A stretch of 64,000 nucleotides of DNA from Anolis carolinensis (lineage: Eukaryota): contig NC_085842.1 of the NCBI RefSeq assembly GCF_035594765.1, positions 9,919,256 to 9,983,255 on the forward strand, written 5' to 3'. Below, in pieces: positions 10,128 to 59,937 of this stretch (its first letter is position 1; each line of letters starts with the position of its first letter). The translations under genes and the position numbers were made by a program. The notes under the pieces were generated by a model that saw nothing but the letters and a program-made list of their open reading frames with translations, was not told the DNA's origin and did not search any database.

Positions 10128-11278
10128 TTAGCCTGTATGTGTTCTCTGGTGCTGGTTAAGGGATGAAGTCCGAGTAAAACATTTTCCACATTCATGGCAT
10201 TTGTAAGGCTTCTCTCCTGTGTGGCTTCTTTTGTGCCTCACCAAGTCTGAAATGGAAGCAAAACATTTCCCACACTCTTGGCACTGGTATGGCTTCCCTA
10301 CTGTGTGGAGTCTTTTGTGTTTCACCAAGGTTGAACTGTCAGCAAAACATTTCCTACACTCCTGGTTCAACAAGGCTGAACTGTCGGTAAAACATTTCCC
10401 ACACTCCTGGCATTGGTATGGCTTCTCTCCTGTGTGGAGTCTTTTGTGGCTCACCAAGGCTGAACTGGAAGCAAAACATTTCCCACACGCCTGGCATTTG
10501 TATGGCTTCTCTCCTGTGTGGAGTCTTTTGTGGCTCACCAAGTTTGAACTGGAAGCAAAACATTTCCCACACGCCTGGCATTTGTATGGCTTCTCTCCTG
10601 TGTGGAGTCTTTTGTGGCTCACCAAGTTTGAACTGGAAGCAAAACATTTCCCACACTCCTGGCATTTGTATGGCTTCTCTCCTGTGTGGAGTCTTTTGTG
10701 GCTCACCAAGGCTGAACTGGAAGCAAAACATTTCCCACACGCCTGGCATTTGTATGGCTTCTCTCCTGTGTGGAGTCTTTTGTGGCTCACCAAGTTTGAA
10801 CTGGAAGCAAAACATTTCCCACACTCCTGGCATTTGTATGGCTTCTCTCCTGTGTGGAGTCTTTTGTGGCTCACCAAGGCTGAACTGTCAGCAAAACATT
10901 TCCCACACTCCTGGCACTGGTATGGCTTCTCTCCTGTGTGGAGTCTTTTGTGGCTCAACAAGGCTGAACTGGAAGCAAAACACTTCCCACACTCTTGGCA
11001 TCTGTATGGTTCCTGACCTGTGTGAAATTTTTTGTGTTTCACCACACATTTTGCAGATACTTTCCCTTTAAGATGGCTTTTCCCAACATCGAGTGTCTTG
11101 TGAAGCACAAGTGCCATATTTTGGGTAAAACACCTCCCACACACACTGCATTTGTCAGGCCTTTCTTTGGCAGAACCTCCATCTTCTCTGTGGGCTTGCT
11201 GCTGTTGACGAAGGCCCCAGTTGTGTCCAAAATGTTTCCTGTATTTGGTGCATACATGGCTCTTTTCCCCGTTATCTA
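10128..11278 (-). CDS. Gene A terminal zinc-finger exon (9 intact C2H2 fingers plus degenerate ones)
   Basis: Cxx[16 protein letters not shown] repeats; acceptor TTCTTCTTCACAG|TA in phase 1. Confidence 0.92.
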
Positions 11279-14200
11279 CTGTGAAGAAGAACATAAACAA
11301 TCGTTCCTCAGTGTGAGTCATAAAGACTCAAAGGATGTGGGATAAGAAGTGGATTGAAATGATCCTCAAAACAACACAGACATGGAGGAAAAGAAGATAT
11401 GCCTGTTGTCCTTTCCCCTCCCCTTGTTCAGTAAAGATGGACCCTGGTTGTCTGCCTGGAGCCTCTAAGAGAGAGATGAGTAACATACGCTCCAGAGGCT
11501 CCCTGTTGCTCAGCCCAGCCCGGTTTTTTATTCCGCCTCCTTCTCTCTGGGGAATGGATGCCTTTTCCCTTCACATCCAAATGCTTGCCTTTTTCTCTAG
11601 CTTTAGACTTTACCAACTACCACCCATTTCACCATCCTTCCCTCCTTTTTCTTTCTCTCCCCCAATCCCAGTTCTCTTTTCCCATGCTCCCTTAATGTTG
11701 GATTTTTCCACTCCAACGTAGAAGATCCCATACCTAATTTCAGAGTACAGTAGAGTCTCGCTTATCCAACATAAACTGACCAGCAGAACATTGGATAAGT
11801 GAAAATGTTGGATAACAAGGAGGGATTAAGGAAAAGCCTATTAAAGGTCAAATTGCATTATGATTTTACAAATTAAGCACCAAAACATCATGTTTTACAA
11901 GAAATTGACAGAAAAAGCAGTTCAATACCTGGTAACATTATGGAGAAATCACTATATTTACGAATTTAGCACCAAAACATCGCAATGTATTGAAAGCATT
12001 GACTACAAAAGTATTTACTACTAAAAATTGACTATAAATATAGAATTACATAAACTAACACTGTCGGAAGTTAAATCTGTAAAAAGTTCAGTCTTGTGAA
12101 GATTTTTTAAAATCTGTGATCCTTGCCTGCTTTTCTGACAACTGCTGTTTCTCCGCTGCCAAGTCTCGCCATCTTTGCAGCATCATTTTGTCAATCCCCG
12201 TTGCTTCTTGTTGCTCAATGTATGTGATTGTGGTTTCTAGAGCCCTAACCCTATCCTTGTGCGAGATTCTGAGAGGCTCGACAGTTGATGCCTGATCATC
12301 AGTTTCGTCGCCATCGTTACTGATAAGAGCAACAATTTCTTCATCCGTTATTTCATACTGATCGTCTTCGTTTATCCAACTTCTAACTTCTTCCGAAGAC
12401 ACATTCTCACACCCAGGGACACGCCGTACTAATTGTAGAATGCTTTCTTCGGTTTCATCTGTGCTTTTCCTTCCCATAATCTCATCCTTATCTTCGCCTA
12501 ACAACTTCTTCCAAGACCTGGCAATTGTTGGACCCCAACCACAGTCCATGCCCTTGCAACCCAAGAAGCAACTTCCTTTACACGGATGCGTTTCCATTTT
12601 TCAATCCTGTCTTGCCCTTATTCTATTTCTTCTATCATTGCCGACAATAGCTTCCTGCGATAGTTCCTTTTGAGCGTTTCCAAAACGCCGAGATCCATTG
12701 GTTGTCATACGGCAGTTACATTATGTGGAAGAAACATCGCCTTCATGTCCCCCTCTTGAAGCTCCTCTGCATCAGGGTGTGTCGGGGCCTTAACTAGCAA
12801 CAAAACCGCATTTCTGGGCAGGTCATTTTCTTTTAAAAAATTATCCATGGAAGGAACAAATTCCTTAGGGCTGGGCTGTAGCACAGCTGGTAAATCACCA
12901 GCAGTACTAAGATCTACCAACCGAAAGGTGGCCAGTTCGAAGCCCGGTTGGGGGTGAGCGCTCGACCTCAAGCCCAGCTCACTGTTTACCTAAGCAGTTC
13001 GAAAACAGTCTATGAGCTGTAAGTAGAGAAATTAGGTACCATAAATTGCGGGGGAGGTATTTTGCGACATCATAAACATCAAGACCAGAAATGTGGTGAC
13101 GAAGAGGAAGTTGGAAGGAGGAAGTTCTGATAGCTCTCCCTCATAGAGAATGAAGCAACAGCACCCCTGTGACTGAATCTGAGCGCAACATCAGCCTCCA
13201 AGGCACCAAAAAAACCGGACTTCAAGACGACATACCTCCTTCTGTTTGTCTTATTCTTTTCTGTCCTGTCTCCAAACGGCATTGAATGTTTGCCGTGTAT
13301 GTGGGGAATAGCGTCTAGATCCAGGGAAGTCCTGCTCCCCTTATTCTATTCTGCCTTGGTCAGACCACACCTGGAATACTGTGTCCAATTCTGGGCACCA
13401 CAATTGAAGGGAGATGTTGACAAGCTGGAAAGCGTCCAGAGGAGGGTGACACAAAGGATCAAGGGTCTGGAGAACAAGCCCTATGAGGAGCAGCTTAAAG
13501 AGCTTGGCATGTTTAGCCTGCAGAAGAGAAGGCTGAGAGGAGACATGATAGCCATGTACAAATATGTGAGGGGAAGTCATAGGGAGGAGGGAGCAAGCTT
13601 GTTTTCTGCTGCCCTGCAGACTAGGACACGGAACAATGGCTTCAAACTACAGGAAAGGAGATTCCACCTCAACATCAGGAAGAACTTCCTCACAGTGAGG
13701 GCTGTTCGGCAGTGGAGGCTGGATGGCCATCTGTTGGGGGTGCTTTGAATGCGATTTCCTGCTTCTTGGCAGGGGGTTGGACTGGATGGCCCATGAGGTC
13801 TCTTCCAACTCTACTATTCTATGATTCTATGTATTGTGATCTGCCCTGAGTCCCCTCGGGGAGATAAGGTGGAATATAAATAAAGTGTTATCGTCATCGT
13901 CATCATCATCATCATCATCATCATCATCATCTTTAAAAATTTCACTGGTCAGCAACACACTTTTTTGATTGTACTATTTTACAGGAAGAGCGTTTTTTGA
14001 AACTGTTTTAAAGGCTCTGGGATTTTTGGGCTTCCCAATCATTGCAAGGTCCATTTTGTGGTTTGCTGTAGCATTGCTGCACGCTAAAATTGTCAGCCTC
14101 TCTTTGCTGTGCTTTTAGCCAGGGGCTGCTGCTTCAGTTCTGGCTGCAAGACTCCTACTGGGTAACACTTTGCAACTGAGGCCGGTCTCGTCACAATTCA

Positions 14201-58220: not shown

Positions 58221-58788
58221 CACAGTTCACAGCCTGTTATGCCTTCAGCTTTGCTGCATTGTTGGATTTTAATCGGTAGGGTTGGATTTTATTTTGTGCA
58301 GAGTATCTTTGCGCACTGTCCCCTTTGGACCTGAGGAGGGATAGTTTGTTGTTAGGCAAGTGTTAAAGCATTTCTCACCAGGCAATGGGCTCACCCTCTT
58401 CCCCTGGGTTTGTTACAGCACGAGACTTGTTTTTCATGTTCCATGAGATCTTTCTCTGTTCAACTCCTGAAGAGATTTTCCCCTCATTTGTCTGCAGGTA
58501 ACTTCTGAAAAAGCTCTGCAAAGAATACGTTGTGAGAGCTTTGCCCAAGGAGTGCTCTAAGTCTAAAGGGACTTCAAAATACACAGCAATGACAACAAGA
58601 AAAAATAAGTAGTAAAAATATATTTCAAGCTACAAACCTATGCAGTTAAGAGGAGGAAATAAGATTGTGCTGAAAAAAGAGAGGCTTGGGAAAGCGAGCA
58701 GAAGGCTACAGCAATACAAAGACTGTGCTGCTCAGGAGGTTATATCTGTGAACGCCTGGCATAATATTTGAATTATAAATATAAAAGA

Positions 58789-59937
58789 ATGGCAAGTCCT
58801 CTACCTCCCTATCCTAGATCACACACAGGGGAGAAGTTACATCAGTGTCTGGAATGTGGGAAACAATTTGATTGCAAAAGTTCTCTTACTGTACATGAAC
58901 GGACCCACACAGGGGAGAAGCCATATGAATGTGTGGAATGTGGAAAGAGCTTCAGTCGGAGTGACAAATTACGTTCCCATCAAAGGACCCACACAGGGGA
59001 GAAACCCTATAAATGCATAGAATGTGGAGAAAGCTTCAGTCGGAGTGACAGTCTACGTTCCCATCAAAGGACCCACACAGGGGAGAAGCCATATAAATGC
59101 ATGGAATGTGGAGAAAACTTCAGTCACAGTGGCAGTCTATGTTCCCATCAAAGGACCCACACAGGGGAGAAGCCCTCTAAATGCATGGAATGTGGAGAAA
59201 ACTTCAGTCACAGTGGCAGTCTACGTTCCCATCAAAGGAAGCACACAGGGGAGAAGCCCTATAAATGCATAGAATGTGGAGAAAATTTCAGTCGGAGTGA
59301 CAGTCTACGTTCCCATCAAAGGAAGCACACAGGGGAGAAGCCATATAAATGCATAGAATGTGGAGAAAGCTTCAGTCAAAGTGGCAGTCTACGTTCCCAT
59401 CAAAAGACCCACACAGGGGAGAAGCCACATAAATGCGTAGAATGCGGAAAGAGCTTCAGTCACAGTGGCAATCTACGTTCCCATCAAAGGACTCACATAG
59501 GGGAGAAGCCATATGAATGTGTGGAATGTGGAAAGAGCTTCAGTCGGAGTGACAAATTACGTTCCCATCAAAGGACCCACACAGGGGAGAAACCCTATAA
59601 ATGCATAGAATGTGGAGAAAGCTTCAGTCGGAGTGACAGTCTACGTTCCCATCAAAGGACCCACACAGGGGAGAAGCCATATAAATGCATGGAATGTGGA
59701 GAAAACTTCAGTCACAGTGGCAGTCTACGTTCCCATCAAAGGAAGCACACAGGGGAGAAGCCCTATAAATGCATAGAATGTGGAGAAAGCTTCAGTCGGA
59801 GTTACAGTCTACGTTCCCATCAAAGGAAGCACACAGGGGAGAAGCCATATAAATGCATAGAATGTGGAGAAAGCCTCAGTCAGAGTGGCAGTCTATGTTC
59901 CCATCAAAGGACCCACACAGAGGAGAAGTCACCTTAA
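58789..59937 (+). CDS. Gene D: C2H2-only zinc finger protein, 382 aa, 13 fingers
   Basis: ATG in AGAATGG context at the position homologous to gene C; acceptor TGCAG| at 58497; in-frame TAA at 58762. Confidence 0.83.

Follow-up and report, generated by a model that had tools for sequence, protein, structure and literature searches.

Introduction

In mammalian zinc finger clusters, genes that encode fingers only (ZNF-only genes) arise through the loss or degeneration of KRAB or SCAN domains, with changes in finger number as well, as described by Tadepally et al. (2008, PMC2443715). For the anole, the passages of Liu et al. on the lizard expansion give gene-model counts of 240 SCAN-KRAB and 723 ZNF-only genes (2014, PMC3971581, citing Emerson and Thomas 2011). 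Here, we analyze a stretch of 64 kb from the green anole, Anolis carolinensis (GCF_035594765.1, contig NC_085842.1, positions 9,919,256 to 9,983,255 of the forward strand), which we call the window and number from its first letter. Two SCAN-KRAB-C2H2 zinc finger genes on its minus strand, A and B, each stand head to head with a finger-only gene on the plus strand, C and D, respectively, with a CpG island between the members of each pair. Bidirectional CpG-island promoters of divergent vertebrate gene pairs typically carry NF-Y, NRF-1 and cyclic AMP response element (CRE) sites.

With the lizard SCAN-KRAB-ZNF expansion described in PMC3971581, A and B share the SCAN domain, the KRAB A box, tandem C2H2 fingers and lineage-specific tandem expansion. 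Their KRAB domain and the lizard consensus reported in that paper both lack the leucine at the center of the MLE motif. A fixed head-to-head pairing is absent from the passages on the expansion, and we found no description of a fixed SCAN-KRAB/finger-only pairing in the literature searched, which was a partial library. Genes C and D fit the effector loss described in the relevant sections of PMC2443715, in that the last exon is complete and retains its acceptor, the leader has degenerated and the start is a new, internal one. What sets them apart from the cases described there is that the effector-less form has been duplicated repeatedly, with its start codon conserved, and always beside a SCAN-KRAB gene on the opposite strand.

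Two further systems invite comparison. As at bidirectional CpG-island promoters, two genes diverge from one island that holds CCAAT boxes, TGACGC sites and a GCGCATGCGC site, and predicted donors face both ways; however, the transcription starts less than 1 kb apart that define such promoters were not observed, and the coding starts here are 9 to 11 kb apart. As in arrays of the PRDM9 and KRAB zinc finger protein type, the 84-bp units are 86 to 94% similar, change is focused at positions -1, 2, 3 and 6, and finger number varies among copies (18, 19 or 23 in one version of the finger-only gene, C-type; 13 or 19 in the other, D-type). Unlike that type, C and D have no PR/SET, KRAB or SSXRD domain, and we have no evidence of a role in recombination. 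The layout is ordinary zinc finger cluster growth by duplication, with no new mechanism.

Two versions of a two-gene cassette

Finger open reading frames (ORFs) are present at 10128-11321 (A) and 39550-41604 (B) on the minus strand and at 29801-31447 (C) and 58768-59937 (D) on the plus strand. A first-pass annotation, made from the letters of the window, had described the layout of a SCAN-KRAB zinc finger gene on the minus strand, a CpG island and a finger-only gene on the plus strand as occurring twice, and this is borne out by the ORFs, the Pfam domains and the composition of the islands. The four ORFs, which it had called intact, are so: the exons of A and B join in frame, and A has one fused, malformed finger. 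The observation in that annotation was mainly sound; its functional interpretation mostly found no support.

The window holds two old paralogous versions, C-type and D-type, of one two-gene cassette of a green anole zinc finger cluster. Each cassette comprises a minus-strand SCAN-KRAB-C2H2 gene of five coding exons; a CpG island, which lies about 3 kb upstream of the SCAN exon and contains a conserved core of tandem CCAAT/TGACGC elements; and, beyond the island, a plus-strand gene whose finger array would be its sole coding exon. Our reading, to which we give a probability of roughly 60%, is that this duplicated cassette joins a SCAN-KRAB-C2H2 gene to a divergent, expressed finger-only gene, and that the two are paired by descent and probably have independent targets.

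Copies of the cassette and their history

A word search with the SCAN ORF of A led to the loci around four close paralogues, here called L002 to L005. All four have the same layout, with SCAN and KRAB exons, a promoter core (84 to 86%) and a divergent finger-only ORF. L002 (9.19-9.21 Mb) and L005 (0.43-0.46 Mb) are C-type, with stop-to-stop frames of 661 aa (23 fingers) and 521 aa (18 fingers), respectively, and L003 (9.22-9.24 Mb) and L004 (on an unplaced contig) are D-type, each with a stop-to-stop frame of 558 aa and 19 fingers. In all, this makes at least six cassettes, and the closest copies (95 to 99%) are found on the same Anolis carolinensis chromosome, at distances of 0.7 and 9.5 Mb. 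Since L002 and L003 are neighbors whose order is that of A/C and B/D, the cassette pair of about 60 kb has itself been duplicated. The B/D cassette of the window is 96.7 to 98.6% identical to L003 over 11 kb, and the C side (26456-31445) is 95 to 99% identical to L002 and L005. The intron of A that follows the SCAN exon (17000-18416) is 96% identical to L003, 87% to L002 and 91% to B, and such mosaic introns suggest gene conversion between cassettes.

Within the window, the A side (9977-20672) and the B side (39400-51446) are collinear in patches of 79 to 98%, and the last exons of C and D, with about 430 bp upstream of them, are about 78 to 83% identical. The interiors (22.5-29.3 kb and 53.5-58.3 kb, 7 versus 5 kb) match each other only in dispersed repeats. 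Because homology is patchy and the interiors cannot be aligned, A/C and B/D are, as judged from these alignments, old paralogues (C and D about 80% identical) and not a clean, recent 30-kb duplicate. The first-pass annotation had proposed that a unit of about 30 kb was duplicated. This stands insofar as the A and B sides, the promoter core (84%) and the last exons of C and D are homologous, but not for the unalignable interiors, and the ages of the parts are unequal. A single tandem duplication of about 30 kb, from A/C to B/D, was rejected: the two halves are not collinear throughout, and each is 95 to 99% identical to copies elsewhere on the chromosome.

The pairing was also looked for at more distant loci. 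Two further anole SCAN paralogues (SCAN 75% and 69%) are arranged head to tail, as are the SCAN-KRAB-finger genes at the two closest A. sagrei relatives sampled, and none of the four has a divergent finger-only ORF or homology to the promoter core within 10 kb. The pairing thus recurs as a unit, as had been claimed, at L002 to L005, but it is not general, being missing at these two anole paralogues and two A. sagrei loci. It looks like the mark of one young subfamily, inherited by co-duplication. The cassette would have spread as a unit, by segmental duplication, followed by gene conversion, insertion of transposable elements and turnover of the finger arrays.

Several other features of the copies were seen. 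About 4.4 kb of the window, from the promoter core to the C-side block (22057-26455), is not matched in L002 or L005, in both of which the homologue of 26456 directly adjoins the core; because this segment holds a predicted plus-strand donor at 22266, C-type copies may differ in their first exon. Reverse-transcriptase fragments lie at 27116-28653 on the minus strand (RVT_1, E 1e-11) and at 62208-63668, and the former sits in a 5-kb block that is 95 to 99% identical in L002 and L005 and was therefore copied with the cassette. A called gene of 1191 residues appears to run from L002:3560 to L003:326 (9,207,057-9,244,358) and to cross a SCAN-KRAB gene on the opposite strand, and other loci are covered by similar giant models of 1860 and 1908 residues. 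These giant models are probably prediction artefacts.

Structure of genes C and D

The coding sequence of C (29801-31447, plus strand) specifies 548 aa with 19 C2H2 fingers and opens in the context AAA|ATG|G; that of D (58789-59937, plus strand) specifies 382 aa with 13 C2H2 fingers and opens in the context AGA|ATG|G. Exactly this 548-aa product of C is recorded as a called gene in GCA_035594765.1 (CM069368.1). Zinc-finger-type Pfam families were the only ones to pass with real stretches in either ORF, with no other domain, and an in-frame stop lies 1 codon (C) or 8 codons (D) upstream of the ATG. A protein word search with C gave no close annotated relative; the best match, from Zootoca at 76% identity, is uninformative on gene structure.

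That C or D has a hidden KRAB or SCAN exon was ruled out for the 64-kb window by two tblastn searches, one with A's own domains (E <= 50) and one with the N-termini of 118 relatives (E <= 1e-3), neither of which returned a plus-strand SCAN or KRAB exon. A coding linker before the fingers was rejected too, with all frames closed and no likeness to the linkers of 120 relatives. The leader of the last exon of C (29519-29800, plus strand), whose start at 29518|29519 is placed by homology to the D acceptor (ctcgcag|GTAACC), would be non-coding, with stops in every frame and four upstream ATGs in weak context. The corresponding leader of D (58498-58788, plus strand) is likewise non-coding, with stops in all frames and two upstream ATGs, and indels between the two leaders shift the frame. 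Because all three frames of the leader are closed, the D fingers cannot be read in frame from any upstream exon, and the array can be opened only at the conserved ATG, which lies at 58789 (29801 in C).

The absence of a KRAB, SCAN or BTB exon spliced in frame follows, for D, from the observed splice described below together with the closed leader and, for C, from homology to D. The description of C and D as effector-less in the first-pass annotation is therefore upheld by the lack of a plus-strand KRAB or SCAN exon in the window, by the splicing of D to a non-coding exon and by the closed leaders. In-frame splicing to a KRAB or SCAN exon, which that annotation had named as evidence to the contrary, was looked for and not found, and the D junction enters the closed leader. 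If translated, the finger-only protein would start at the conserved ATG, about 10 to 16 codons before the first finger, and would be a poly-zinc-finger DNA binder free of KRAB and SCAN.

Transcription and splicing of D

To follow expression, the four smallest sequencing runs were mapped on 52915-58914, beside an assembly gap. No run found to contain the sequence is on record as RNA, and most are clearly DNA; two of the four mapped behaved like RNA. From these we conclude that D is transcribed and spliced. Contigs from run X24 join a non-coding 5' exon, exon X (54504-54609, plus strand; no ATG; acceptor cggcag|AG, donor AAAAG|gtgagg), to the last exon across an intron of 3888 nt (54610-58497, plus strand; GT..AG; joint 54607->58496, cut +2). 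The same junction is present in run X4, from a different study, as a loose end CAGCAGGTGCCAAA before 58496. Coverage in X24 extends over exons and repeats and takes in no unique intron sequence.

One X24 contig is the same as the window over 410 nt (58496-58905), with zero differences, and the closest paralogue, L003, differs at 3 places; the source is therefore the window's own D. A second X24 contig, on exon X, has three differences, the same count that separates the window from L003, and a sister copy of D is probably expressed as well. No expression of C or D was among the outcomes that the first-pass annotation had set against its proposal, and for D we find expression, its GT..AG joint being present in X24 and X4, which come from separate studies and are RNA by guess. 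In a finger-only gene built like this, the 5' exon or exons and the first ~290 nt of the last exon would be non-coding. A homologue of exon X was not found upstream of C by BLAST.

The runs held other sequences of note. One X4 contig matches exon X to 54603 and continues with 255 letters (AGAAAGATATCAGC...) that are absent from the window; it seems that in a paralogue an exon resembling exon X is joined by splicing to another exon further downstream. Other loose-end sequences from the runs are also absent from the window, and 109 loose letters past 58905 look like an assembly chimera within the finger repeat. In the D intron, 55323-56375 is about 1 kb long against 148 bp in L003 and overlaps a very high-copy repeat, with a depth of thousands in DNA-like runs. 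It is probably a recent insertion.

Evolution of the finger arrays

In the alignment, the start codons of C and D coincide. No other ATG combines A at -3 with G at +4, an optimal context that is conserved in five distinct copies, and the N-terminal start sequence that follows comes in one 13-residue form in C, L002 and L005 and one 16-residue form in D, L003 and L004. The arrays are open in all copies, with 13 to 23 fingers. In simulations with 5% random substitution, the frame stayed open in 2% of cases for C (548 codons) and 7% for D.

When each mutation was counted once per alignment column, the ratio of non-synonymous to synonymous events in the finger framework was 0.41 in C and in D (p ~0.02-0.03), and the four contact positions had 3.7 times more non-synonymous events per site (p ~4e-4). 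Between C and D, the ratio of non-synonymous to synonymous substitution rates (dN/dS) was 0.24 for the framework and 2.4 for the contacts, and all-pairs estimates were 0.24 to 0.30 and 1.7 to 3.7, respectively. The finger arrays apparently evolve like coding DNA-binding domains.

CpG islands and the shared promoter

CpG island 1 occupies 21500-22460, with a GC content of 0.61 to 0.66 and an observed/expected CpG ratio of 0.73 to 0.85. Its conserved core (21848-22032) consists of two tandem GGAGAC-TGACGC-CCAAT modules, which are followed by the GCGCATGCGC site; a plus-strand donor, GAG|GTGAGT (22266|22267), is predicted after it. The right part of CpG island 2 (52915-53450; GC content 0.69, observed/expected ratio 0.63) contains a core at 52963-53138 that is 84% identical to 21848-22032, and plus-strand donors are predicted there at 53313 and 53328, of which 53313 is at the place homologous to 22266. 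By eye, promoter homology can be traced to about 22450 and 53445, across a GA repeat, GTCT repeats and the GCGCATGCGC site. Every one of the five aligned copies retains the core, with GGAGAC, TGACGC and CCAAT invariant.

A CpG island is thus shared by both genes of a pair. One promoter serving both is plausible on geometric grounds, and divergent transcription from the shared island would be the most likely regulatory arrangement for genes so placed. The pair of modules is also the sole intergenic stretch that can be aligned between C-type and D-type copies (21848-22032 and 52963-53138; L002, L003 and L005).

The third promoter copy that had been reported to follow the two cassettes is real, though just 175 bp of it, the left part, fall in the window before the end cuts it (63826-64000, 95% identical to 21646-21820); no SCAN exon was found to its left. 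On the A side of promoter 1 lies a 24-bp minisatellite (20669-21629; 40 copies, 93% matches; TRF), and TRF reported no minisatellite array left of the gap in promoter copy 2. This gap is a run of N at 52782-52914, within promoter 2 and outside all four ORFs; in L003 (97 to 98% identical), the sequences on either side of it are collinear, share one orientation and are separated by 129 bp. Listed ORFs that span the gap have no Pfam match and were set aside as artefacts.

Targets of the paired proteins and alternative explanations

The first-pass annotation had suggested that the finger-only protein acts as a competitor or decoy of the paired repressor. The contact residues (positions -1, 2, 3 and 6) read SSAS/SSNS in A, ESAS/SSDK/CSTS in B, QGNT/EGHI/RGDI in C and RDSS/HGSS in D, and the four-residue sets of A and B have no member in common with those of C and D. 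Because a decoy must read the same DNA and these residues are unrelated, the suggestion falls. Synonymous divergence between A and C is saturated. Going by the contact residues, the two proteins most likely bind different targets independently.

It is tempting to go further and suppose that selection keeps the cassette together, with co-regulation from one bidirectional promoter of the X-box/CRE/CCAAT type making a functional pair. If true, the KRAB-less binder could mark or protect targets of its own, others being silenced by its partner, and the unit could have been amplified whole in an arms race with transposable elements. A regulatory partnership is suggested by adjacency alone, and we hold such a selected pair to be very improbable. 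The absence of the pairing at the four more distant loci is equally compatible with function and with hitch-hiking through co-duplication.

That last point is one of several that weigh against a divergent, expressed finger-only gene as we read it. RNA-like evidence covers D alone, not C, A or B; the RNA label of X24 and X4 is a guess, and their contigs show neither strand nor level. No transcription start was seen for A to D, and contigs cannot show starts. The sole observed upstream exon of D lies 1.2 kb past the promoter core, and the predicted first exon of D is simple repeat that was skipped in read mapping, with no contig covering it. Among the nine closest independent finger pairs within C, the ratio of non-synonymous to synonymous differences per site (pN/pS) is 0.94 over 21 changes, a sign of no recent constraint. 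The leaders, with 2 to 4 upstream ATGs and upstream ORFs of 43 to 78 codons, would depress translation, and part of the selection signal could predate the truncation and come from a full-length ancestor.

Could C and D then be transcribed relics, whose effector exons were lost and whose truncated last exon rides along in duplications, giving RNA that is non-coding or poorly translated? In that case, nothing more than the youth of the copies and the homogenization of the 84-bp repeats by unequal exchange would keep the frames open. The stops in all frames of the leaders, the frame-shifting indels between C and D and the upstream ORFs favor such a history, as do the neutral look of the latest changes within C, the divergence of just 1 to 5% between the nearest copies and the confinement of the pairing to one young subfamily. 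However, C-type and D-type have diverged by about 20% and yet have the same ATG, the optimal context and open arrays in five distinct copies, when the chance of an open frame is at most 0.02 at 5% neutral change. A dead array, moreover, would not show a constrained framework together with 3.7-fold enrichment at the contact positions, and we regard relics as unlikely.

Other doubts concern the island as the source of the transcripts. Exon X carries a good acceptor, which implies at least one more upstream exon, not seen, and a high-copy repeat (53715-54400) lies directly upstream of it; a promoter other than the island, for example a repeat-derived one just upstream of exon X, might serve the arrays. 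C and D might also be no independent genes and arise in read-through or fusion transcripts from C-type to D-type, as the 1191-residue model seems to indicate by spanning 37 kb from a C-type ATG (L002) to a D-type stop (L003), and an alternative acceptor, cctatcctag|A, is found just inside the D ORF. Against this, the exact 548-aa ORF of C is recorded as its own product, plus-strand donors are predicted at homologous places in both islands, and the observed junction enters the non-coding leader and not the array, while the giant models (1191, 1860 and 1908 residues, on both strands) look like artefacts of prediction in tandem arrays. Altogether, we think it quite improbable that C and D start at another promoter or belong to read-through or fusion transcripts.

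If the duplicated cassette is, as we prefer to read it, a SCAN-KRAB-C2H2 gene and an expressed finger-only gene paired by descent, a whole lizard zinc finger subfamily grows by copying a two-gene unit, and a finger-only gene that has a secondary start codon is able to remain expressed, and apparently coding, over many duplications. This is relevant to how KRAB-less zinc finger proteins originate. It is also of use for annotation, as present models at these loci include SCAN-only fragments and giant fusions.

Genes A and B

Both A and B have the SCAN domain, the KRAB A box and the in-frame C2H2 array of a SCAN-KRAB-C2H2 gene. The exons were searched singly, with Pfam cut-offs of 27 bits for SCAN (PF02023) and 20.4 bits for KRAB (PF01352). 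In A, on the minus strand, the coding part of the SCAN exon (18505-18894; 120.8 bits) starts with the ATG at 18894 and runs for 130 codons to the donor CAG|gtgaga. It is followed by coding exon 2b (18286-18403), found by tblastn with the annotated paralogues P0126, P0129 and P0130, and by the small coding exon 3 (17335-17405), found with P0126 and P0130, both with AG/GT sites. The KRAB-A exon (15964-16090; 60.6 bits) is 127 nt long, is bounded by splice sites and passes from phase 0 to 1. The last coding exon (10128-11278, stop included) begins at the acceptor cacag|TAGATAAC in phase 1 and holds a linker and about 10 C2H2 fingers, recognized by Pfam zf-C2H2/zf-H2C2_2 and in translation, in which the fused, malformed finger is also seen.

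Gene B, likewise on the minus strand, has its SCAN coding part at 49465-49854 (PF02023, 120.6 bits), exon 2b at 49012-49129 and exon 3 at 48463-48533, the latter two found by tblastn with annotated anole paralogues and flanked by AG/GT sites. Its KRAB-A exon is at 45849-45975 (PF01352, 57.4 bits; splice sites), and its last coding exon (39550-41579) holds a linker and about 21 fingers, the array being made up of a higher-order repeat of 252 bp that spans three fingers. When canonical AG/GT sites are used, the coding exons, five in each gene, sum in frame to 1857 nt (618 aa) in A and 2736 nt (911 aa) in B, sums that come from exon lengths and phases. The exon order (SCAN, 2b, 3, KRAB, fingers) is that of the annotated paralogue P0130.

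The first-pass annotation had taken it as known that KRAB recruits TRIM28. For A and B this is overstated: their KRAB sequence, KQVMEEMNG, reads VMEE where the canonical mammalian form is VMLE, so that the central leucine of the MLE motif is missing. The relevant passage of PMC3971581 says the same of the lizard KRAB consensus and adds that KAP1 binding there is untested and cannot be assumed.

Read-through at the donor of the SCAN exon stays open on the minus strand in both A (18319-18894, 191 aa) and B (49297-49854, 186 aa). NCBI models of the close paralogues P0122 to P0129 are SCAN-only, at 182 to 250 aa, and some of them read past the SCAN donor into the intron. Because A and B share an open read-through with these models, SCAN-only isoforms of A and B are possible.

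Satellite and tandem repeats

A purine-rich satellite at 36746-37899 and 38212-38542 has a 96-bp unit within a 394-bp higher-order unit and a GC skew of up to 0.86. It sits just past the 3' end of B, where the homology between A and B stops. Near the left end of the window, an 81-bp tandem repeat of 1.9 copies (1624-1776) contains ACTACAACTCCCA, which we take to resemble the ZNF143/SBS motif.

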